Made by a program: the position numbers and the translations under genes
Notes under the pieces: model-generated
Databases searched by the model: none
Seen by the model: the letters and a program-made list of their open reading frames with translations, nothing else
Told to the model about the DNA's origin: nothing
Origin: Octopus sinensis
Taxonomy: Eukaryota
Assembly: GCF_006345805.1 (NCBI RefSeq)
Contig: NC_043006.1
Location: 40,982,001 to 41,046,000 of the forward strand
Length of the DNA: 64,000 bases
Direction: 5' to 3'
Shown: positions 5,361 to 62,027 of the stretch, piece by piece
How positions within the stretch are numbered: the first letter of the stretch is position 1
Layout: every line of letters begins with the position of its first letter

Positions 5361-5815
5361 AGTGTTGAACACCAGATCGAATACTTTGCACTATTTAGTT
5401 GCATCTTATTACGTTCTGATTTCAAAACGTCCACTCAGACTCATGGCTTTAATTCTTGTCCAAACAGTATGTTTTACATATGTACAGGAGTCGACTGAAT
5501 AAAAAAATATGGCATCATTATATAAAAACAGAAATTGAGGTAGATTACTCGTCAAGTACTAGAGGGATATAATTAGCTAACCCCACTCCGTCTAAAATTC
5601 TTGACGTTTTGCTGGCAGAATCGTTAGCACGCCGAGCAAAATGCTTATTGGCATTTCGTCCGTCTTTACGTTCTAAGTTCAAATGCCACAGAGGTCGCAT
5701 TTGCCTTTCATCTTTTTGGGGTCGATAAAATAAGTACCAGTTGAGTACTGGGGTAAATATAATAGACTTAACTATTCCCGTAAATCTCCTGGCCTAGTAC
5801 CAAAATTTGAAACTA
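5361..5815 (+). mobile_element. Two tandem family A SINEs (first very diverged)
   Basis: Paralogous to 23738-24172. Confidence 0.7.
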
Positions 5816-10489: not shown

Positions 10490-10700
10490 TCAAATTTTGG
10501 CACAAGGCCAGTGATTTCGAGGGAGCGAGTAAATCGATTACGTCGACCCTAGTGCTCAACTGTTATCGATTTTATCGACTCTGAAAAGATGAAACGCAAA
10601 GTCGACCTCGGCGAAATTTGAACTCAGAACGTGAAGACGGACAAACTGCAGCTAAGCATTTTGTCCGGTGCGGTAACGATTTTGCCAGCTCACTGCGCTT
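10490..10700 (-). mobile_element. SINE family A
   Basis: Family A head and body. Confidence 0.8.
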
Positions 10701-11070: not shown

Positions 11071-11310
11071 AAAGGCAGCGAGCTGGCAGAACTGTTAGCA
11101 CGCCGAGCAAAATACTTAACAGCATTTCGTCCATCTTTACATTCTGAGTTCGATTTCTGCCGAGGTCGACTTTGCTTCACATCTTTTCGGGGTCTATAAA
11201 GTAATTAGCAGTTGATAAATGGAGGGTGGTGGTGGGAAGGAAGGGTGTCGATGTAATCGTCTTACACCTCCGCCGAATTTGTTGGTCTTGTGCCAAAGTT
11301 TGAAACCAAC
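11071..11310 (+). mobile_element. SINE family A
   Basis: aaggcagcgagctggcagaactgttagc.. Confidence 0.8.
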
Positions 11311-12694: not shown

Positions 12695-12700
12695 TGCCTT

Positions 12701-13038
12701 TGCACCTCGGGCAAGTGTCTTCTACTATAACCTCGGGCCGACCAAAGCCATGTGAGTGGATTTGGTAGATGGAAACTGAAAGAAGCCCGTCGTATATATG
12801 TATATATATGTATTTGTGTGTGTATATGTTTGTGTGACTGAATTTGTCCCCACCACCATCGCTTGACAACCGATGCTGGTGTGTTTACGTCCCCGTAATT
12901 TAGCGGTTCAGCAAAAGAGTCCGATAGAATAAGTACTAGGCTTACAAGGAATAAGTCATGGGGTCGATTTGCTCTACTAAAGGCGGTGCTCCAGCATGGC
13001 CACAGTCAAATGACTGAAGCAAGTAAAAGAGTAAAAGA
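12701..13038 (+). mobile_element. SINE family B, 5'-truncated
   Basis: Internal (TA)/(TG) tract; ends gactgaagcaagtaaaagag. Confidence 0.85.
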
Positions 13039-14144: not shown

Positions 14145-14830
14145 AAGGGGCGGCGAGCTGGGAGAATCGTTAGCATGCTGGACGTAATGCTTAGCGGTAT
14201 TTCGCCCGTCGTTACTTTCTGGGTTCAAATTCCACCGAAGTCGATTTTGACTTTCATCCTTTCGGGGTCTGTAAAATAAGTACCAGTTGAAGAGTGGGGG
14301 ACGATGTAATCGACTCAGAATCCCCACCCCGCCAAATTGCTGCCCTTGTGACAAAATTTGAACCATTATTATTATTATTATTAAGGCGGTGATCTGGCAG
14401 AATATTTAGCATGCCGGGCGAAATGTTTAGTAGCATTTCGTCCATTTTTCCGTTCTCGGTTCAAGTTCTTCCGCGGTCGACTTAACCTTTCATCCTTTCG
14501 AGGTCGATAAAGTAAGTACCAGTTGAACACTGGGGCCGATGTAATCGGCTCATTCCCACTTCCCCCAAGCTGCCCTTATGGCAAAAATTGAAATCATAAT
14601 TATTTTTATCATTACTAGAGCATGAGCTGGCAGAATTGTTAGCACACCGGGCGAAATGCTTAGCGGTATTTTGCCCGTCACTACGATCTGAGTTCAAATT
14701 CCGCCGAGATCGACTTTACCTTTTATCTTTTCGGGGTCGATAAATTATGTACCAGTTGAGTACTGGGGTCGAAGTAATCAACTATCTCCCTCCCCCAAAT
14801 TTCAGGCCTTTTGCCTATAATAGAAAGGAT
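14144..14830 (+). mobile_element. Three head-to-tail family A SINEs separated by short (ATT)n
   Basis: Heads near 14146, 14384 and 14622. Confidence 0.85.
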
Positions 14831-14981
14831 TATAGTTATTATTATCATTATTTGAGAAGTTAGTAACCGGAAGATAATATAGATTTCAGGATAGCCTGAT
14901 ATTTAAGTACATTATTATTCTTTCACGATTTAAAGAGATGATTTCAAATTTCTGCTTGGTATTGAAAATATTTTTCGCATG

Positions 14982-15400
14982 TAGGCGCAGGACTGGCTGT
15001 GTGGTAAGTAGCTAGCTTGCCAACCACATGGTTCCGGGTTCAGTCCCACTGCGTGGCACCTTGGGCAAGTGCCTTCTACTATAGCCTCGGGCCGACCAAA
15101 GCCTTGTGAGTGGATTTGGTAGACGGAAACTGAAAGAAGTCCATCGTATATATGTATATGTATATATATGTATATATGTGTGTGCGCGTGTGTGTTTGTG
15201 TCTGTGTTTGTCTCCCCCTCCAACATCACTTGACAACCGATGCTGGTGTGTTTACGTCCCCGTAACTTAGCGGTTCGGCAAAAGAGTCCGATAGAATAAG
15301 TACTAGGCTTACAAAGAATACGTCCTGGGGTCGATTTGCTCGACTAAAGGCGGTGCTCCAGCATAGCTGCAGTCAAATGACTGAAACAAGTAAAAGAGAA
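14982..15400 (+). mobile_element. SINE family B, full length
   Basis: tggctgtgtggtaag (A box), ggttccgggttcagtccc (B box), tail aaatgactgaaacaagtaaaag. Confidence 0.9.
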
Positions 15401-17925: not shown

Positions 17926-18804
17926 CTATTCCATCTGATAGGCAGAGAATTCTGAAATAAAGAAATATAAAACATGGGTCATTAGTTTTGGAAAAGATTC
18001 AGTTTTTTTATGACATGAATTGTCCCGTTTGCAATATGGTAAACATTTATATTTGGTGAGAATGTCACTTTTGTTGTTCTTGCATTGTCTGGCAGAAGGC
18101 AGGTTGCTAAGACACCGTTTCATGATGTTTAGCACACTGGGGAAGGATATTTTGCTATAGATCTGTTTGTATTTGGACACAGCGTGCTTGTAGAGGTACG
18201 CAGAAGTCAAGAGGTAATCATTGGTAACCAGGAGAAAATGAGTATAAGACGAGTCGTTTTCATAAATATCGTTGTTTAAGCTGACTATACCAAACGTACA
18301 AATCCCTTCTTTCAAGAACGTAATATAATACAGGAGGTGAGATTCAGCCCAATGGGATTTAGTAAATGTTTCACTGTCCTTACGGAACCTTACAGCTTCA
18401 GACATAACCTTATTGATTCTTTTGTGTCCCAAAGTAGTTATATACAAACCAACAATCGTGCGGAGAGACACTGTATGCGTCAGCACAGGAGTTGGAAGGA
18501 TGGTAAACCAGTTGTGCCCGTTCGGTTTCAGCTTTCCCGAAAGAACGTTCGGATAGTTGAATTCTCTGTCGAAGATAAATTTATTTCGATACAAAATACT
18601 TCCCCATAACGATTTAGATATCTTAGCATGTTTCGTCGACCGTTGTTTTCTAATACGTCTGTTGACCTCCAGGTTGTTGCTCGATACGTTCAGGTGCTCT
18701 TCCTTCATAGACGTCTTGTTGGGTTGGTGTTGCAGCAGTTCATTTTCCACCAAGGTGGAGCTTACCAGACCGATCGTAAGTACGGTGATCAATAGTACAT
18801 ACAT
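17926..18804 (-). CDS. Single-coding-exon gene for a 292-aa predicted secreted or GPI-anchored protein of unknown family
   Basis: 879-nt uninterrupted, non-repetitive ORF in AT-rich DNA. Hydrophobic N-terminus MYVLLITVLTIGLVSS (signal peptide), basic RRIRKQR segment, four N-x-S/T sequons, five clustered Cys (231-264) and a hydrophobic C-terminal stretch. ATG in AAAATG context, 14 nt after a polypyrimidine tract and AG acceptor. Confidence 0.85.
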   Translation of the reverse strand: MYVLLITVLTIGLVSSTLVENELLQHQPNKTSMKEEHLNVSSNNLEVNRRIRKQRSTKHAKISKSLWGSILYRNKFIFDREFNYPNVLSGKLKPNGHNWFTILPTPVLTHTVSLRTIVGLYITTLGHKRINKVMSEAVRFRKDSETFTKSHWAESHLLYYITFLKEGICTFGIVSLNNDIYENDSSYTHFLLVTNDYLLTSAYLYKHAVSKYKQIYSKISFPSVLNIMKRCLSNLPSARQCKNNKSDILTKYKCLPYCKRDNSCHKKTESFPKLMTHVLYFFISEFSAYQME

Positions 18805-18850
18805 TTTACGGCGCTCATCTGAAAAATTGCAAAATATCAGAAAACGAAGA
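18805..18850 (-). other. Splice acceptor and 5' UTR part of the coding exon
   Basis: Minus strand tcttcgttttctgatattttgcaatttttcag|atgagcgccgtaaaATG; AG at 18820-18819. Implies an upstream non-coding exon at higher coordinates. Confidence 0.65.
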
Positions 18851-19809
18851 TTAAATTAGTAACTTCATTTACTACGCACCATATTAACAAAAGTAACAAG
18901 AACAAAAACAACGGCTTCAGCCTACGAGTGAGTTTCTACGTGGTTGTTTCATTTTCTAAAAAGGACAACCAAATTCCCCTTAAATCATACGCTACCACCT
19001 TAAAAAACAGAATAAATTTATAGGATAATCTCGTTTGCCACACATCCGCTGTCATCATAGTCAGGCACAGACGTTGCACTGTGGTTAAGAAGCACATTTT
19101 GCAAACATATGGTTTCGGGTTTATTCCGGACCGACCCGTGCCTTGAGAGTAAATTTGGCTGACGGAAACTGCATAGAAGACCGTCGTGTATGTTTATATA
19201 TTTCTCCTCTTTTTCTCATTTTCTATTCTGTCTTTATCTCTCTCTTTGAAAAGTTGTGACAATTAACAAATAACTCCCAAAAACCTAACGGAGCTCTCTG
19301 ACTTGTATAATGGTAAATGTTCTTAATTGTAAACATCAGACTAGCTACAAACCATTAACGTCAAATTCCTGATGAAGCATGCACATAGAATAGAGGCATG
19401 CTCAAGATTCATAGCCATTATAAATAATATTTGATAGTATCCTATGACTGTGAAATTGTCCTCATGCATCTAGGATGCAGAAACGTATGTTGCAATGTAT
19501 TAAAGTCCAAAAATTTCCACACACAAGTCAGTTTCCTTATTATTCTCTTGCTCTCTCTCTCTCTCTCTCTCTCACTCACTTACCCATTCACTCACTTACC
19601 CATTCACTCACTCACTCACTCACTCACTCACTCACTCACTCACTCACTCACTCACTCACTCACGCACTCACTCACTCACTCACTCACGCACTCACTCATT
19701 CACTCACTCTCTCTCTATCTCTATGTATGTATGTATGTATGTATGTATGTATGTATGTATGTATGTATGTATGTATGTATATATATATATAGATATACAC
19801 ATATGTGTA

Positions 19810-19846
<37 letters not shown>

Positions 19847-20271
19847 ATCATGTGATCTATAGTGGCAAACCTGATTGCCGCTGATGGCGTTTCGTTGAAT
19901 CTCTTCTTTAGTTTAGACAGGATAATGTGTCCTTCATGCTTTACCACCAAAAGAACTAGAGGTATAAATGCAGTAAAGGTGCGTCATCTGGAAATCGAAA
20001 TCAAGACTGGGCTCTTTAAAGAAATGGTAGATGTTTCTTTTTCATAGAGATCGGGGTAACGCATATAATAGGGAAAAGAATGTGATGTCATGATATACCC
20101 CCACCTCCGTGCTCCACCATGATATACAAAAAAGATTTGGTTGAAATAATTCGGATTACAACAAAGGAAATATTTATTTTTGATCGGTTTGAGAAGGAAA
20201 GAATACACTGTGTAAGCTTTCTAGGCTCTTCAAGACTGGGCGATAATGATAATTTGCAATTTTTGCACAAG

Positions 20272-21880: not shown

Positions 21881-22129
21881 AAGGAATGAGGGGTGTGCCA
21901 TCCCTTGACAAGGGCCCCATCGATCAAGTCCTGATTTTTTTTTTAGCTGGTGAGAAATGTCGAGTTTATTCTCTAAGATTACTGTAAGTTCAACCACGAT
22001 TCATTTTCTAGGATTTATTAATCAATTTCTATCTTAACATTTTTGTATAATAAATGATAAAAAAAACCCATTTTACTCAAGGGTCTAATCTATAAATTGA
22101 TAGTATCGAGTGATTCTATGCAAGCATAG

Positions 22130-22277
22130 AGGCGTACGAGTGGCTGTGTGGTAAGCAGCTTGCTAGCGAACCACATGGTTCCGGGTTCAGCCCCACTGCT
22201 TGGCACCTTGGGCAAGTGTCTTCTTCTATAGCCTCGAGCCGACCAAAGCCTTGTGACAGAAGCCCGTCGTATATATG

Positions 22278-22342
<65 letters not shown>

Positions 22343-22545
22343 TTGTGTGTCTGTGTTTGTCCCCCCAAGATCGCTTGACAACCGATGCTGGTGAGTTTAC
22401 GTCCCCGTAACTAAGCGGTTCGGTAAAAGAGACCGATAGAAAAAGTACTAGGCTTACAAAGAATAAGCCCTGGAGTCGATTTGGTCGACTAAAGGCGGTG
22501 CTCCAGCATGGCCACAGTCAAATGACTGAAACAAGTAAAAGAGTA
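22130..22545 (+). mobile_element. SINE family B
   Basis: Head and tail present, small internal deletion. Confidence 0.9.
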
Positions 22546-23737: not shown

Positions 23738-24172
23738 AGTATTGAATACCAGATCGAATACTTTGCAATATTTAGTTGCAACTTATTACGATCTGATTTC
23801 AAACCGTCGACTTATGGCTTTGATTCTTGTCCAAATAGTATGTTTTACACATGTATAGGAGGCTGTTGAATAAAAAATATGGCAACATAATATAAAAAGA
23901 ATGAGGTAGATTACCCGTCAAGTACTTGAGTAATATAAACGACCAACTCCACTCCATCAAAAATTCCTGACCTTTCGCTAGTAGAATCGTCAGCATGCCG
24001 GGCAAAATGCTTAACGGCATTTCGTCCGTCTTTACGTTCTAAGTTCAAATAACGTCGAGGTCGCATTTGCCTCTCATCCTTTCGGCGTCGATAAAATAAG
24101 CACCAGTTGCGAATCGACTTAAACTTACCCGTAAATCTCCTGGCCTTATGCCAAAATTTGAACCTATCATTA
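23738..24172 (+). mobile_element. Two tandem family A SINEs (paralog of 5361-5815)
   Basis: Share the diagnostic variants gtcgcatttgcct and cccgtaaatctcctggcct with the 5.4-5.8 kb pair. Confidence 0.7.
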
Positions 24173-29374: not shown

Positions 29375-29848
29375 GATAGTGAGTTCGCAGTATTGTTACC
29401 TCGACAGACAAAGTACTGGGCAGTAACTGTTCCAACGGCTTATGTTCTTTGTTCAAATTCTGCCGAAGCCGACTTTGCCTTTCATCCTTTCGGGGTCGAT
29501 TAAATAAATACCAGTTACGCACTGGGGTCAATATGATCGACTTAATCCCTTTGTCTGTCCTTGTTTGTCTCCTCTATGTTTAGTCCCCCGGTGGACAATA
29601 AACAAATAAATGTTTAATTGGTACTTTATTTAGGCGGCGAGCTGGCAGAAACGTTAGCACGTCGGGTGAAATGCTTAGTGGCATTTCGTCTGTCTTTACG
29701 TTCTGAGTTCAAATTCCACCGAGGTAGACTTTGCCTTTCATCCTTTCGGAGTCGATGAATTACGTAACAGTAGCGTACTGGGGTCGATATGATCGACTGC
29801 CCCCACCACAAAAAAAATTGGGGCCTTGTGCCTGAAGTAGAAAAGAAT
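29375..29848 (+). mobile_element. Two family A SINEs in tandem
   Basis: Headless long-tail copy, then a full head at about 29631. Confidence 0.8.
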
Positions 29849-30298
29849 ATTAATTTCTGTTGCGTCATCATGTCGACAATATAGTTTTCAATGAATGGAC
29901 CAATAATATATCGGCAAGTAACGTCTGACAGCCTTGAGATATTTTGTTAAAGTTTATGGTTTAATTAAAGGAGCGCAATCTGTGTCTTCCGGCCTCCTTT
30001 TAGCTCAGATATTCTTCATCATAACATGTCTTGTGACCATGTTCCCAAATCTGTTACGGCCTTGTAGCTACTGTGGGTGCGGGTGGGAGCGGCTGGGAGC
30101 GGCTGGATGCCTTTCAGTAACTATACTCTGCAATCGCTGAGTATGCATATATTTTGTGAGTGTATGTGTGTGTGTGTTGTGTGTGTGTGTGCGTGCGTAT
30201 GCATACGTTATTTATCATAACGTAAGAGTCGGGTATTGTGGAGATACATACATATGCATACATAAATACACACACACACACACATACAAATATACTAC

Positions 30299-39700: not shown

Positions 39701-40162
39701 ATGATGAAATTAGAGAAAGGTTGCCCATTTCTGAATATTTCTAGAAATTTACGCAATTCAATTAACTAATATATATGGAAAGGGAATAGTATCATGTCTG
39801 TTAACGATATGGATATCCAGTTTTCTATTGCTCTGGAGGACTAGAGGCAGCAGCTGAAATTCATTTATTTATATGTTTTATGGATACCTTAAACCTATTC
39901 AGTTAAGCTTTAAACACATCGTACAATTTTGAAAGTTTAATTGACTAATTAGACAGTTGTCATTCATAATTATTTATTAATTAGCGGGAGTGAGAATTTG
40001 AGAGAGTAGGTTATTGGGTACTTTACTTGATGCACCGGATTGCATCTTCTTTGTTTTAATTTATGCGCACAAATTTTTTGAAGAACTGCTGTGAGTGTGT
40101 GAATTTTAATTCATTTTCAAATAATAATGGGGCTGAAATTAAACTTACTGAAATTAAACTTA

Positions 40163-40500
40163 CCCCGGGACTTATTCTTTGTAAATCCAGTACTTATTCT
40201 ATCGGTCTCTTTTGCCGAACCGCTAAGTTACGGGGCCGTAAACACACCAGCATCGGTTGTCAAGCTATGTTGAGTGAGACAAACACAGACACACATACAC
40301 ATATATATAAATACATATATACGATGGGCTTCTTTCAGTTTCCGTCTACCAAATCCACTCACAAGGCTTTGGTCGGCCCGAGGCTACAGTAGAAGACACT
40401 TGCCCAAGGTGCCGCGCAGTGGGACTGAACTCGGAACCATGTGGTTCGTAAGCAAACTACTTACGACACAGTCACTGCTGGGCTTGCTTACCACACAGTC
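40163..40500 (-). mobile_element. SINE family B
   Basis: Head and body, tail truncated. Confidence 0.85.
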
Positions 40501-41304
40501 ACAAAGTAAGGTTCTGGTGTCAGGTGATTGTTTGAACCCTTTGTGTATTGGAGTAAATATTATTTGTCAACATAACATGGCAGTCCTGGTTTAGAACGAA
40601 TGTTGCTTTATTTTAGCCCCAAGAGACATCGTCTCCAGCTGGCTATATGACACGATCTGTGTCCTTATATTTTCGAATAATGGAATCTAGCACCCCCACT
40701 CAGCTGAAAACAATATCTGTGTATCGCGATTTCCGAGTGGGGGTGCTAGTTTCCCTTGTTCGAAAATATAAGGACACAGATCGTATCATGTAGCTAGCAG
40801 GAGACGATGTCTCATGGGGCTAAATTACAGCAACATTCGTCCTAAATCAGGACTATCATGTTATGTTGGCAAATAATATTTACTCCAAAGTACTGTTGCG
40901 AGTCGTGGACAATGTTGAAGGCAGATGAGAAAGGAGTGAGCGCTTTTGAAATGTGGTGTTACCGCAGAATCCTTAGAGTGTCGTGGACGGAGAGAAGGAC
41001 GAACAACTGGGTACTAGAACAGCTCAGTTGCAAGATGACGCTTCGGCGAAATATCATGAAGCGGAAGCTATGGTTCTTTGGCCACGTCATGCGCCGGGAT
41101 GAACTTGAGCGAACGATCATAACTGGCAAGGTGAACGGCAGACGTAAAAGAAGCAGACCACCGCTTCTTGGCTGAAAGACATCGCAGCCACAGGATTGTT
41201 TTTATTCTCAGCTGTCCATGGGGTAGAGGACGGGAGAAGGTGGCAAGACATCGCGATGACCACAGCATCGCATAGTGCGACACCTGACTAGGATGATGAT
41301 GATG
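40501..41304 (+). mobile_element. RTE (BovB-like) LINE 3' end, interrupted by a MITE
   Basis: CESWTMLKADEKGVSAFEMWCYRRILRVSWTERRTNNWVL..RKLWFFGHVMRRDELERTIITGKVNGRRKRSRP; ends in a (GAT)n tail. Confidence 0.9.
40548..40890. mobile_element. Fold-back MITE with about 160-bp inverted arms
   Basis: Arms 40548-40712 and 40733-40888 are reverse complements; TA on both sides (40546-47, 40891-92). A related diverged sequence lies near 38330-38460. Confidence 0.85.
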
Positions 41305-43687: not shown

Positions 43688-44072
43688 TATATACTAAAAA
43701 ATCAGATTATCATAAGTAAGTTTATATTAACAAACTGGAGTCGATGTAATCGTTTTGCCCATTCTTCCAAAATTTCAGCCCTTGGGCCTGCAGAGAATTA
43801 TATATTGCTACGAATCTCCTTTATACATGTGTGAGTAAGATTTTCTTTATTAAACACTAGCTTAAAAGCCGCACTTCGCTCAGACTTTGAAGCTAGCTCC
43901 TGCAGAGGGCTAATTGGGTATGTGGCCCCAGATTTTAGGGAGCGATAATAATAAAGCATTTATTGGTGCCCTACCAATATGGTATTACTTTAAATTCAGT
44001 TTAAATGAAAAATTTGTAACTTCAGAAATTTTTGGAGTTCTTTTAAAATTTGAATAGATATATATATATATA

Positions 44073-44465
44073 CTAGTGGCTGTGTGGTAAGTAGCTTGCT
44101 TACGAACCACATGGTTCTGGGTTCAGTCCCACTGCGTGGCACCTTGGGCAAGTGTCTTCTACTATAGCCTCGGGCTGACCAAAGCCTTGTGAGTGGATTT
44201 GGTAGACGGAAATTGAAAGAAGCCCGTCGTATATATGTATATATATGTATGTGTGTGTATATGTTCATGTGTCTGCGTTTGTCCCCCAAGCATCGCTTGA
44301 CAACCGATGCTGGTGCGTTTATGTCCCCGTAACTTAGCAGTTCGGTAAAAGAGAACGATAGAATAAGTACTAGGTTTACAAAGAATAAGTCCTGGGGTCA
44401 ATTTGCTCGACTAAAGGCGGTGCTCCAGCATGGCCACAGTCACATGACTGAAACAAGTAAAATAA
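44073..44465 (+). mobile_element. SINE family B, full length
   Basis: As 14982-15400. Confidence 0.9.
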
Positions 44466-46199: not shown

Positions 46200-46406
46200 G
46201 GTCATAAAATGTAAACATGTTTATATTTACGCATGTGTCTATGTACATATATGTATGTAAGCATGCAAGTATACATGTACGTATGCATATATCCATAGAC
46301 CATGCAAGCATAAATGAACGAATATATATATATATATATGCATGTATGTATATATGTATATATATATATTTGCATATTCACACACATACATATTTACATA
46401 TGTATG

Positions 46407-46464
<58 letters not shown>

Positions 46465-46532
46465 TATATGTACATACACATACACACGAAGAAACTCAAA
46501 CTCACACATGCATGTATATATATGTGTGTGTA

Positions 46533-46581
<49 letters not shown>

Positions 46582-46660
46582 ATATATATATATGTATATA
46601 TATACACATACATACATACAAACATACATATATATGTATACACACACGCATAGTTGTATG
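46200..46660. repeat. (TA)n/(TG)n/(CA)n microsatellite field
   Basis: Direct inspection; source of several spurious Y/I/C/V ORFs. Confidence 0.95.
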
Positions 46661-47019
46661 TGTTTATGCGTGTGAATGTGTGAGTACATGTGTGTTAGTG
46701 AGTCTGTACGTCAGAAACTGACATAGTTTTTTTTTTACTGAAGAATAATGTTTTCATTTCGACAAGAGTTAATATTAATTTACATCAACAGCTATAACTG
46801 TTGAGAACCAAAGAAGCGTAAGAGTATAGTAGAAACACGCTGAGCTGTCTGCATGTAGCATGTATCTACCAAAACATGAACTTAACCATGTGTGTCCTAT
46901 ATGTGAAGGTTTTGTTTTGCTTGTTTTGACGTAAGCAGTATCATTATAACAATTATCAAGATCGTGGTCGGCCATTTTCTCAGACAAGAGAAAACGTAAT
47001 AGTTTCAAATTTTGACCCA

Positions 47020-48650: not shown

Positions 48651-48814
48651 AAATATTTTATCTTCTTAATCTTCATTACTTTTATCATTATTTCTATCGT
48701 ATTTTCAATATTATTTTCATTAATACGATCTATATAACTTACCTGTAACACATTTCTTGTTATTACTTATCCAAAGACTTCTACTATGTTATCTTATTCA
48801 GATATGTAGGCACA

Positions 48815-49200
48815 GGAGTGGCTGTGTGGTAAGTAGCTTGCTTATCAACCACATGGTTCCGGGTTCAGTCCCACTGCCTGGCACCTTGGGTAAGTGTCTT
48901 CTACTATAGCCTCGGGCCAACCAAAGCCTTGTGAGTGGATTTGGTAGACGGAAACTCAAAGAAGCCCATCGTATATATGTATATATGTGTATGTGTGTGT
49001 GTATGTTTGTGTGTCTGTGTTTGTCCCCCTAGCATTGCTTGACAACCGATACTGGTGTGTTTATATCCCCGTAACTTAGCGGTTCGACAAAAGACCGATG
49101 GAATAAGTACTGGGCTTACAAAGAATAAGTCTTGTGGTCGATTTGTTCGACTAAAGGCGGTGCTCCAGCATGGCCGCAGTCAAATGACTGAGACAAGTAA
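48815..49200 (+). mobile_element. SINE family B, full length
   Basis: As 14982-15400. Confidence 0.9.
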
Positions 49201-50985: not shown

Positions 50986-51184
50986 TATATATATAGGTAT
51001 AGGGATAAGATGGATAATTTGTTGTAAGGCATCAGGTAATTTATAGCCTACTCATACAGAAGCGAGTAGGAAAACATAAATTTAGGAGAAAAATAGCAGA
51101 ATCCGGAAGGTACATGGTTATAGTTATTCCTCATATACGAAAACTACCTACAGGTTAAATGTTTATAATGGTTATATATATTTA

Positions 51185-51594
51185 TTTATTGCCCACAGGG
51201 GCTAAACTCTGGTGGGATAAACAAGGAGAGACAAAGGGAATTAAGTCGATTACATTTATCCCAGTGCGTAACTGATACTTATTTAATCGACCCCGAAAGG
51301 AAGAAATGCAAAGTCGACCTCGGCAGAATTTGAACTCAGAACGTAACGGCAGACGAAATACCTACTTCTTTACTACCCACAAGGGGCTAAACACAGAGAG
51401 GACAAACAAGGACAGACAAACGGATTAAGTCGATTATATCGACCCCAGTGCGTAGCTGGTACTTATTTAATCGACCCCGAAAAGATGAAAGGCAAAGTCG
51501 ACCTCGGCGGAATTTGAACTCAGATCGTAAGGGAAGACGAAACACCACTAAGCATTTCGCCCGGCTTGCTAACGATTCTACCAGCTCGCCACCC
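51185..51594 (-). mobile_element. Family A SINE with tandemly repeated body (dimer)
   Basis: One head (ends 51594) and two copies of the about 200-bp body. Confidence 0.85.
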
Positions 51595-51986
51595 TATATA
51601 TAATGGTTATACAGCCAGACTGAGTTTCGGTTATGAAACAAGAACCCAAATTACAACATGTGTAATCCATTCTCGGGATTTCCATACTTTATGCCCGTTA
51701 ATAAAAAACCATGGATTATTAATAATGTAATAATGAAGCATGTCCTGTTTAGTCTGTAAAGCAAAAAACTTGTTTATATAGTCTATAGACGGTTAACGTG
51801 TGTATACTGTTTCACAGTCTATTTTGTATTGAGTGCTTTAAATTTAGTTAACACAGATATACATATATACAGAGACATGCATATATTCATATGTGAATAA
51901 ATGTGTATGTATAATATATACGTATAATTTTCTTTCTACCCATCCACCCGTCCGTCCGTGTGTCTGCTAATCTGTCTGCCTGTCTG

Positions 51987-52064
<78 letters not shown>

Positions 52065-52098
52065 AACCTTTCGTAATGTAAGTATTGTAAAATTTATA

Positions 52099-52144
<46 letters not shown>

Positions 52145-52146
<2 letters not shown>

Positions 52147-52300
52147 GACGGGCTTCTTTCAGTTTCCGTCTACCTAATCCGCTCACAAGGCTTTGGTCGA
52201 CCCGAGGCTATAGCAGATGACACTTGTTCAGGGTGCCATGTAGTAGAACGAACCCAAAACCATGTTGTTGGTAAGCAAGCTTCTTACCACACAGCCACTC
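52145..52300 (-). mobile_element. SINE family B, 5' half
   Basis: Head through gaaactgaaagaagcccgtcg. Confidence 0.8.
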
Positions 52301-52320
52301 TATGTATGTATGCATGTATG

Positions 52321-52352
<32 letters not shown>

Positions 52353-52383
52353 TGTATGTATGTATGTATGTATGTATGTATGT

Positions 52384-52419
<36 letters not shown>

Positions 52420-52422
52420 TAT

Positions 52423-52473
<51 letters not shown>

Positions 52474-52664
52474 GTGTGTGTGTGTGTTTACAGAAAAGTA
52501 CACATTGGTTAACAAAAAAGTTTATATTTTTACGAAATTGATGAATTCAATTACTGCGTTCTAGTTTAGCTACAAACTAGAACGATCACGTGCGCCCTAC
52601 AACTAAACTAGAACGAAGCAACTGATTTCAACAATTTCTGAAAATAACAAACTTTTATTCTTTT

Positions 52665-53085
52665 ATTCTCTTACTTGTCTCAGTCATTTGACTGCGGCCA
52701 TGCTGGAGCACTGGTTTTAGTCGAACCAATCGACTCCAGGACTTATTCTTTGTAAGCCTAGTACTTATTCTATAGGTCTCTTTTGCTGAGCCGACAGGCT
52801 ACGGGGGGACGTAAACACACCAACATCGGTTGTCAAGCGATGGTGGGGGACAGATACCGACACACAAACACACACACACACACACTTACACACACATACC
52901 CACAAACGCATATATATATATATACAGCAGGCTTATTTCAGTTTCCGTCTGCCAAATCCACACACAAGAGTTTGATCGGCCCGAGGCTACTGCAGAATAT
53001 ACCTGCTCAAGGTGTCACGCAGTGGGACTGAATCCGGAGCCATGTGGTTGGTAAGCAAGCTACGTACCACACAGCCACGCATGCG
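52665..53085 (-). mobile_element. SINE family B, full length
   Basis: As 14982-15400. Confidence 0.9.
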
Positions 53086-53273
53086 CCTATTCTGTTAACC
53101 AATGTGTACCTTTCTGTAAACATCTAATTACTAAAGTGGAAAAATTATCAGACAAGCTTTTTTTGTTAATTTTTACGAAATATATAATAACGGTACCAAT
53201 GACATTATATTTCTTATTTTACTATATATATATATATTTTACTAATATATAGATATATATATTATATAATATC

Positions 53274-54791: not shown

Positions 54792-55182
54792 GAGTAGCTG
54801 TGTGGTAAATAGCTTGCTTACCAACCACATGGTTCCGGGTTCAGTCCTACAACGTGGCACCTTAGGCAAGTGTCTTCTACAATAGCTTCGGGCCGATCAA
54901 AGCCTTGTGAGTGGATTTGATAGACGGAAACTGAAAAGAAGCCCGTCGTACATATGCATATATATGTGTGTGTTTGTGTGTCTGTGTTTGTCCCTCCAAC
55001 ATCGCTTCACAACCGATGCTGGTGTGTATACGTCCCCGTAACTTGGCGGTTCGGCTAAAAGGGACCGATAGAATAAGTACTAAGGCTTACAAAGAATAAG
55101 TCCTGGGGTCGATTTGGTCGACTAAAGGCGGTGCTCCAGCATGGCCACAGTCAAGTGACTGAAACAAGTAAAAGAGTAAAAG
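54790..55182 (+). mobile_element. SINE family B, full length
   Basis: As 14982-15400. Confidence 0.9.
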
Positions 55183-60854: not shown

Positions 60855-61235
60855 TTTTACATGTTTCAGTCATTTGACTGTGGCCATGCTGGAGCACCTT
60901 TAATCGAGTAAATCGACCCCAGGACTTATTCTTTGTAAGCCTAGTACTTATTCTATCGGTCTCTTTTGCCGAACCGCTAAGGTACGGGGACGTAAACACA
61001 CCAGCATCGGTTGTCAAGCGATGTTGGGGGGACAAATGCAGACACACAAACACACACGCACACATTTATAGATATACATATATACGACGGTCTTCTTTCA
61101 GTTTCCGCTTACCGAATCCATTCACATGGCTTTGGTCGGCTGTAGTAGAAGACACTTGCCCAAGGTGCTAAACAGTGGGACTGAACCCAGAACCATGTGG
61201 TTGGTAAGCAAGCTACTTACCACACAGCCACTCCA
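60855..61235 (-). mobile_element. SINE family B, full length
   Basis: As 14982-15400. Confidence 0.9.
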
Positions 61236-61795: not shown

Positions 61796-62027
61796 TATTT
61801 CTTTACTACCCACAAGGGGCTAAACACAGAGAGGACAAACAAGGACAGAAAAACGGATTAAGTCGATTACATCGACCCCAGTGCGTAACTAGTACTTATT
61901 TAATCGACCCCGAAGGATGAAAGGCAAAGTCGACCTCAGCAGAATTTGAACTCAGAACGTAGCGGCAGACAAAATACCTCAAAGCATTTCGCCTGGCGTG
62001 CTAACGATTTTGCCAGCTCGCCGCCTT
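61796..62027 (-). mobile_element. Family A SINE with probable 13-bp TSD
   Basis: Flanks gcgttcctttacc (61783-95) and gcgttcgtttacc (62028-40). Confidence 0.85.

Follow-up and report, generated by a model that had tools for sequence, protein, structure and literature searches.

Secreted factors that are activated by proteolysis, such as the pro-neurotrophins, the precursors of the TGF-beta family and the large prohormones, combine a signal peptide, a variable propeptide, a furin-type R-x-x-R/S site and a conserved, disulfide-bonded mature domain. The classical helical cytokines fold with an up-up-down-down topology connected by long crossover loops, and the Unpaired-type proteins of Drosophila provide an example of basic, helical, secreted JAK/STAT ligands that are restricted to one lineage. 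Here we describe a gene of Octopus sinensis whose product compares in part with each of these systems. It is a 292-codon open reading frame (ORF), running from ATG to TAG on the minus strand at positions 17926-18804 of a 64,000-nucleotide (nt) stretch of DNA, hereafter the window, and it encodes the A-type protein of a cephalopod family with two clades. It is a genuine and conserved gene that evolves under purifying selection, yields spliced transcripts in cuttlefish and has no relatives in known families. We consider it somewhat probable (about 55%) that it is a functional, single-copy coleoid gene for a secreted proprotein which would act as an extracellular ligand.

The window is an exact match to O. 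sinensis assembly GCA_006345805.1, chromosome CM016868.1, at ∼41.0 Mb, and the ORF product is 100% identical to an NCBI O. sinensis protein from the same place (CM016868.1, ∼41.0 Mb). Apart from translated microsatellites, no other ORF in the window reaches 150 amino acids (aa). The longest ATG-initiated ORF was 149 aa in 100 mononucleotide shuffles of the window (mean 110) and 167 aa in 100 first-order Markov simulations (mean 116), which excludes chance as the source of an ORF of 292 aa. The position, the length and the standing of this ORF as the only long non-repetitive one agree with a preliminary description made from the DNA letters alone. The sequence details listed there (hydrophobic N-terminus, RRIRKQR at residues 49-55, four sequons, five cysteines and hydrophobic tail) are likewise all present.

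Immediately upstream of the coding sequence (CDS) lies a 3' splice site (Table 1). The coding exon begins at 18818, the acceptor ending 14 nt upstream of the ATG, and in O. bimaculoides, Argonauta, two decapodiforms and the paralogues an acceptor occupies the equivalent place, 9-16 nt before the start codon. This is also the acceptor of the O. vulgaris gene model CAI9728045, which fits the junction from residue 28 onward. This conserved acceptor, used by the O. vulgaris model, indicates that at least one 5' exon exists. Judged from sequence, the CDS is confined to one exon, as the preliminary description had it, yet the gene as a whole has more than one exon. A tblastn search did not locate the 5' exon of the O. 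vulgaris model in the window, and that exon probably lies more than 45 kb upstream or outside the window.

Splicing at this site is seen in cuttlefish, where the RNA-type contigs L002 and L023 differ in their leaders, and each leader leaves the genomic contig L015 precisely at the acceptor AG; outside its leader, L023 is 99.6% identical to L015. The paralogue has the same splice pattern (L012 against L006, 99.8% identical). Since the contigs part from the genomic sequence exactly at the AG, they represent spliced mRNAs of both paralogues, and the gene is transcribed and spliced in cuttlefish. Origin as a recent retrogene was rejected, there being no poly(A) tract within 600 nt past the stop and an intron in the 5' untranslated region (5'-UTR) common to both paralogues. 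The coding exon also opens with a short upstream ORF (uORF; Table 1), the ATG of which is found at the same position in O. bimaculoides and Argonauta and not in the decapodiforms; in octopods it may be a translational control element.

Relatives were sought in 5.8 billion proteins by word-indexed search (last at E<=10) and in 1.84 billion representatives by exhaustive phmmer, and neither collection held a relative outside the cephalopods, consistent with the lineage-specific protein proposed in the preliminary description. The label of orphan given to it there has to be abandoned, as orthologues occur across octopods and decapodiforms, together with an ancient paralogue clade. A-type orthologues were found in O. 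vulgaris (100% identity over 292 aa), O. bimaculoides (XP_014768757, 97%), Argonauta hians (75%; genomic ORF intact to 293 aa), a cuttlefish cluster that includes an Acanthosepion pharaonis entry (∼52%) and a second decapodiform (assembly ERZ21867824, ∼52%), with intact ORFs in all five. The B-type paralogues, 28-34% identical to the window protein, were recovered from the same four lineages as the A type. In O. sinensis the B-type gene is LOC118765122, which shares chromosome CM016868.1 with the window gene and lies 8.2 Mb away (∼49.2 Mb, contig L005); it too consists of a 5' exon, ∼16 kb upstream, and one coding exon. A neighbour-joining tree of nine family members resolves two clades that each mirror the species tree, indicating that the duplication is older than the octopod-decapodiform split. 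There is one syntenic copy per species and one copy per paralogue clade in each lineage sampled. On the sequences collected, this is a two-paralogue family restricted to coleoid cephalopods.

Several public models of these genes begin at an ATG in the 5' exon, which adds 7-32 residues before the signal peptide and would hide it from secretion predictors. Upstream starts are used by the O. vulgaris model CAI9728045 (P0006) and by isoform X1 of O. sinensis LOC118765122 (P0014; L005 10001-10084 and 26227-27069), and an upstream start or wrong extent was noted in Argonauta P0016 and P0002 (L004 10001-10882) and cuttlefish P0004 (L002 191-1078). Also, the A-type model of Argonauta is labelled partial (247 aa) despite the intact genomic ORF.

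The CDS is ∼96.5% identical to that of O. bimaculoides (31 differences in 876 aligned coding bases) within a collinear locus whose non-coding flanks are 86-93% identical; against Argonauta and the decapodiform, essentially the CDS alone still aligns with the window. The ratio of nonsynonymous to synonymous substitution rates (dN/dS) was determined overall, for the mature part (residue 57 onward) and for the pre-pro part (residues 1-56), giving respectively 0.12, 0.036 and 0.31 between O. sinensis and O. bimaculoides, 0.125, 0.089 and 0.21 between O. sinensis and Argonauta, and 0.065, 0.028 and 0.35 between the two decapodiforms. The mature part thus gives values of 0.03-0.09 where the pre-pro part gives 0.2-0.36, and of the 10 nonsynonymous differences from O. 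bimaculoides, residues 1-56 account for 8. The gene is under strong purifying selection, which is tighter on the mature part than on the propeptide. Disruption of the ORF in related species, which had been named beforehand as evidence that would tell against a gene, was not seen: the ORFs are intact and dN/dS is low.

These values bear on the proposal that the protein is a venom, defensive or antimicrobial secretion (e.g. of salivary gland, skin or suckers) acting through basic amphipathic helices. Like many secreted effectors it is basic, predicted to be helical and disulfide-bonded, and equipped with a putative propeptide, and a gland source had been suggested in the preliminary description. 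However, such proteins are usually fast-evolving and multi-copy, in contrast with the low mature dN/dS and the one copy per clade and lineage found here, and no known toxin or antimicrobial family was matched, so that a role of this kind is very improbable.

Searches against known families returned no relative. Pfam gave only noise for the window protein and seven family members (RXLR, E 0.06; EF-hand, E 0.004 in one member), and querying the PDB by sequence, whether with the protein, with a profile of the family or with the N-terminal 85 aa or C-terminal 77 aa of the mature chain, yielded no match beyond noise (RAD54B, E 1.7). No structural match was found in BFVD by Foldseek with the better of two AlphaFold2 (AF2) models, and no relative occurs among 2.9 million viral contigs. 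In the library of papers searched by full text, no mention was found of the accession or LOC numbers, of the SRA runs or of six conserved peptides, and topical searches yielded nothing of relevance. The family thus appears to have no relatives among known protein families, and the preliminary description, which recognised none, is supported by Pfam, by PDB sequence and by Foldseek against both PDB and BFVD.

It is also extremely unlikely that the gene is derived from a transposon or virus, whether active or domesticated. The ORF does sit among interspersed repeats, since 29% of the window matches elsewhere within the window, which makes "transposon debris" a fair name for its setting, and a protein with a signal peptide, a furin site, long helices and a cysteine cluster is superficially reminiscent of the class I fusion proteins of viruses. 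The ORF itself, however, is unique in the window (0% self-match) and present as one syntenic copy per species; no transposase, reverse transcriptase, integrase or envelope domain was found by Pfam, nor any viral-contig relative or BFVD match, a C-terminal transmembrane segment is absent, and both paralogues share the 5'-UTR intron.

The predicted protein begins with a putative signal peptide, the only segment whose Kyte-Doolittle hydropathy, averaged over 19 residues, is above 1.6 (2.17), no 19-residue window elsewhere exceeding 1.52. A 12-residue N-terminal hydrophobic core (2.7-3.6) recurs in all nine family members despite little sequence identity, so that by this heuristic they share the N-terminal core of classical secretory proteins, as the preliminary description had supposed. 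No other membrane-length hydrophobic segment is present, and in particular no transmembrane segment at the C-terminus. The signal peptide is followed by a polar, fast-evolving segment that would constitute the propeptide and ends in the basic motif RRIRKQR. All five A-type proteins have R-x-x-R followed by Ser at one alignment column (RKQR/S, RKER/S twice, RNRR/S and RKRR/S), which agrees with the convertase site of the preliminary description. The motif is conserved among orthologues and lies in a region that is disordered in the AF2 models, in keeping with proproteins processed by furin or related proprotein convertases, and cleavage after R55 is predicted. The resemblance to the furin-processed precursors mentioned above thus extends from the signal peptide, variable propeptide, R-x-x-R/S site and conserved, putatively disulfide-bonded mature domain to a far stronger constraint on the mature part than on its propeptide. 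In contrast with those precursors, the mature domain is predicted to be helical and not a cystine knot, the propeptide spans only ∼39 residues, and no sequence or fold match connects the two.

A signal peptide, disulfides and strong conservation would suit equally well a protein that is not exported but stays in the lumen of the secretory or endolysosomal pathway, for instance as a chaperone, cofactor or processing factor. Yet the proteins lack a KDEL/HDEL-type C-terminus (they end in ...YQME, ...LEDR and ...LKHE), a luminal housekeeping factor restricted to coleoids would be unusual, and furin-type sites are typical of cargo activated in or after the trans-Golgi, all of which renders this location improbable.

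The most conserved part of the protein follows the predicted cleavage site. Twelve columns are invariant in eight aligned sequences (E81, G90, K91, L92, N98, W99, F100, L103, P104, T105, V107 and S113), and the most conserved family motif, SGKLKPNG.NWF.ILPTPV, lies within residues 57-113. Downstream, three long helices with short turns between them are modelled, followed by a cysteine-rich connector of short helices and a C-terminal helix (Table 1). Six cysteine columns (C169, 231, 241, 254, 258 and 264) are invariant in all nine family members; the cluster reported in the preliminary description is therefore conserved, C169 having been overlooked there. The A-clade cysteines comprise two CX9C pairs plus C258, and by their spacing could staple a helical hairpin that C169 ties to the bundle. 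Of the four sequons (N29, N39, N183 and N244), present as described, none is conserved in decapodiforms. Release of an internal peptide at GH[KR]R129 was considered a weak possibility and set aside, as only the A clade conserves this site, which falls within a predicted helix.

The cysteine spacing invites comparison with the twin CX9C or CHCH fold, as C231-x9-C241 and C254-x9-C264 of the A type could likewise staple a helix-turn-helix hairpin by two disulfides. CHCH proteins, however, are small, lack a signal peptide and reside in the mitochondrial intermembrane space, whereas the motif here belongs to a secreted-type domain of 237 aa that contains C258 in addition; the B-clade sequences read (P0014, P0016 and P0015) have x8 as their first spacing, and Pfam gave no CHCH/CX9C match. 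Two other leads of the preliminary description, CAP/CRISP and ShK-like modules, relied on a loose visual likeness (a His-containing motif and a C-x3-C spacing) and did not survive. No match to CAP (PF00188) was obtained at E<=10 for the window protein or any of seven family members, FTKSHWAES reads QSRLHLAAT in decapodiforms and is thus not conserved, and the CAP fold is an alpha-beta-alpha sandwich, unlike the all-helical prediction obtained here. ShK (PF01549) was not matched either, the observed spacing being C-x9-C-x12-C-x3-C-x5-C with the sixth cysteine 62 residues upstream. An AID/APOBEC-like deaminase (H-x-A-E ... P-x-C-x3-C) was also rejected, since decapodiforms lack the Glu (HLAAT) and the paralogues lack the His (QWAKQ, EWAKE), the predicted fold is all-helical and not alpha/beta, and Pfam showed no match.

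The tail, LMTHVLYFFISEF at residues 274-286, is part of the final helix. The short hydrophobic run VLYFFI near the C-terminus had suggested a glycosylphosphatidylinositol (GPI) anchor, and with it a protein tethered to the membrane in this or another manner. This run is only six residues long, where a GPI signal ends in a hydrophobic stretch of roughly 10-20, and is followed by the charged stretch SEFSAYQME; hydropathy averages 0.62 over the last 19 residues, and the tail is conserved and predicted to pack as a helix in the domain. PKLM..VLYFFISEF is retained throughout the A clade, and the B clade has a strongly basic helix in its place (hydropathy -0.4 to -0.9). The GPI-type label was therefore discarded, and any membrane tether is most unlikely.

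In structural comparison the predicted mature domain gave matches no better than generic helical-bundle noise. Like interferon-beta, prolactin and placental lactogen, which are among the top PDB matches of Foldseek for both AF2 models, the window protein is predicted to be secreted and helical with few disulfides. Those matches are nevertheless at noise level (E 0.3-1.1, template modelling (TM) score 0.2-0.35, root-mean-square deviation 12-18 A), there is no sequence similarity, and the short turns of the model do not fit an up-up-down-down arrangement. The four-helix-bundle architecture of class I/II cytokines was accordingly not recovered from the moderate-confidence model, an outcome that a better model could change. 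Other PDB matches at the same level include ferritins and SH3BP5, and prolactin itself scored E 1.1 (TM 0.23-0.33); across PDB and BFVD the best E was 0.075-0.34, with TM <0.35. The Unpaired-type ligands offer an analogy only: they are also basic, secreted, predicted-helical proteins with homologues confined to a restricted clade, and no sequence relationship to the cephalopod protein was found.

A secreted protein without a signalling role, that is, an extracellular carrier or binding protein (of lipid, metal or glycan), a matrix component or an all-helical enzyme, would agree with a core modelled as a bundle of amphipathic helices and with the ferritins and the three-helix bundle of a mite group-21 allergen among the nearest, non-significant Foldseek neighbours. 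The pI of 9.6 of the mature chain and the very basic C-terminal helix of the paralogues would also suit binding to polyanions or membranes. On the other hand, no invariant clusters of His, Glu or Asp of the metal-binding kind are present, no carrier or enzyme family was matched in Pfam, PDB or Foldseek, and a single copy per paralogue and lineage with near-invariant surface-length motifs is more typical of partner-specific ligands. Such a function is possible, though unlikely.

In the ligand reading favoured here, the N-terminal signal peptide would bring the chain into the endoplasmic reticulum, where the six invariant cysteines may pair as three disulfides. A furin-type convertase would then cut after R-x-x-R55, freeing the mature part from the poorly conserved 39-residue propeptide. 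The released product would be a basic protein of ∼27.7 kDa in which a very conserved, extended segment at the N-terminus precedes three long helices, a connector stapled by disulfides and a last helix. It would most likely work extracellularly, by way of a specific and conserved partner, as a ligand resembling a hormone, cytokine or growth factor. A ligand is suggested by the extreme conservation across the octopod-decapodiform divergence together with the one copy of each paralogue per lineage. A partner-specific ligand also fits better than a venom, immune or structural secretion because of the conservation, the single copy, the tighter constraint on the mature part and the paralogue-specific C-terminal helices.

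Several observations weigh against this reading. The R-x-x-R motif is absent from all four B-type paralogues, suggesting that the fold does not depend on cleavage. Eight sequences went into the AF2 model, which is of moderate quality only, with a mean predicted local distance difference test (pLDDT) score of 59.8 and values of ∼60-86 over residues 113-288; it leaves residues 57-113, and with them the motif most conserved in the family, without a confident structure. Classical helical cytokines have an up-up-down-down topology, whereas the short turns linking the three long helices here suggest a simple up-down bundle, and Foldseek found nothing significant in the PDB with either AF2 model, interferon-beta being the best match (E 0.34, TM 0.21-0.29). 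Transcript contigs were found from cuttlefish only; the absence of octopus transcript contigs from the collection is uninformative, since octopus whole-genome-sequencing contigs are absent from it as well. The results would also accommodate a carrier, matrix or enzymatic role as well as a ligand.

Table 1. Predicted features of the A-type gene and repeat copies in the window (positions are those of the window; residues are those of the 292-aa protein).
Feature	Position	Strand	Remarks
Complete CDS, A-type member of the two-clade cephalopod family	17926..18804	minus	292 codons plus TAG at 17926-17928
3' splice site, polypyrimidine tract and CAG	18819..18840	minus	AG at 18820-18819; joins non-coding 5' exon to coding exon
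uORF MSAVKCMYY*	18789..18818	minus	nine codons, out of frame; starts at first base of coding exon, overlaps main ATG
Putative signal peptide, residues 1-16, MYVLLITVLTIGLVSS	18757..18804	minus	hydropathy heuristic; cleavage position approximate
Putative propeptide, residues 17-55	18640..18756	minus	polar, fast-evolving (dN/dS); disordered in AF2 model
Furin/proprotein-convertase-type site RRIRKQR, residues 49-55	18640..18660	minus	predicted cleavage R55/S56
Predicted mature chain, residues 56-292	17929..18639	minus	237 aa, 27.7 kDa, pI 9.6
Most conserved segment, residues 81-113, EFNYPNVLSGKLKPNGHNWFTILPTPVLTHTVSLRT	18466..18564	minus	pLDDT <50 in both AF2 runs
Three predicted long helices, residues 114-142, 146-176 and 185-215	18160..18465	minus	AF2, pLDDT ∼60-86; short turns between; invariant C169 included
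Cysteine-rich connector of short helices, residues 231-264	18013..18114	minus	C231-x9-C241-x12-C254-x3-C258-x5-C264
Predicted C-terminal helix, residues 265-287	17944..18012	minus	AF2 model; includes the hydrophobic tail
SINE-like element copies	12698-13005, 14977-15367, 22119-22517, 40162-40476, 44071-44439, 48808-49179, 52692-53088, 54792-55150, 60878-61233	both	
Second repeat family copies	5611-5771, 10534-10691, 11073-11212, 14149-14833, 23977-24111, 29440-29852, 51176-51593, 61796-62026		

The remainder of the window is rich in repeats, among them two short interspersed families of ∼10 copies each (Table 1). The first resembles a short interspersed nuclear element (SINE) of ∼400 bp with an internal microsatellite; it occurs on both strands, and its near-full copies are 75-83% identical to one another. 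No tRNA-like head was detected in it by ARAGORN, nor any Rfam match. The second family consists of units of ∼160-260 bp, partly in tandem (e.g. 14149-14833 and 29440-29852), and has copies in the O. bimaculoides locus (L003) as well. An ORF fragment containing CESWTMLKADEKGVSAFEMWCYRRILRVSWTERRTNNWVLEQL at 40846-41172 on the plus strand gave no Pfam match; as a lead only, we take it to be like the C-terminal tail of ORF2 of a long interspersed nuclear element of RTE/CR1 type. Long compound microsatellites occur at 19430-19950, 46208-46718, 51928-52560 and many other places. They translate to runs such as (SLTH)n and (MYVC)n, account for all other long ORFs of the window and are a source of false ORF calls. 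Ten other ORFs of the window had no Pfam match, and Rfam and tRNA scans of the window were empty.

The gene is already publicly annotated as an "uncharacterized protein", and what is new is that the family is now defined, dated and described in its architecture, with start sites corrected. The finding would be an ordinary one if this were just another routine secreted protein whose role is unknown. A bolder and decidedly doubtful extension is that the two paralogues establish an undescribed family of coleoid-specific signalling ligands with a fold new to the PDB, in which furin cleavage would serve as an activation switch of the A type only; such ligands could be, for example, helical cytokine- or hormone-like factors of an orphan cephalopod receptor system. 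Cephalopod genomes contain many lineage-restricted genes, few of which have a functional hypothesis. This gene stands out among them by its retention, as two single-copy paralogues, in all four sampled lineages on both sides of the octopod-decapodiform split, by very strong purifying selection and by the predicted architecture of a protease-activated factor, and it is a tractable candidate for a coleoid-specific signalling molecule.

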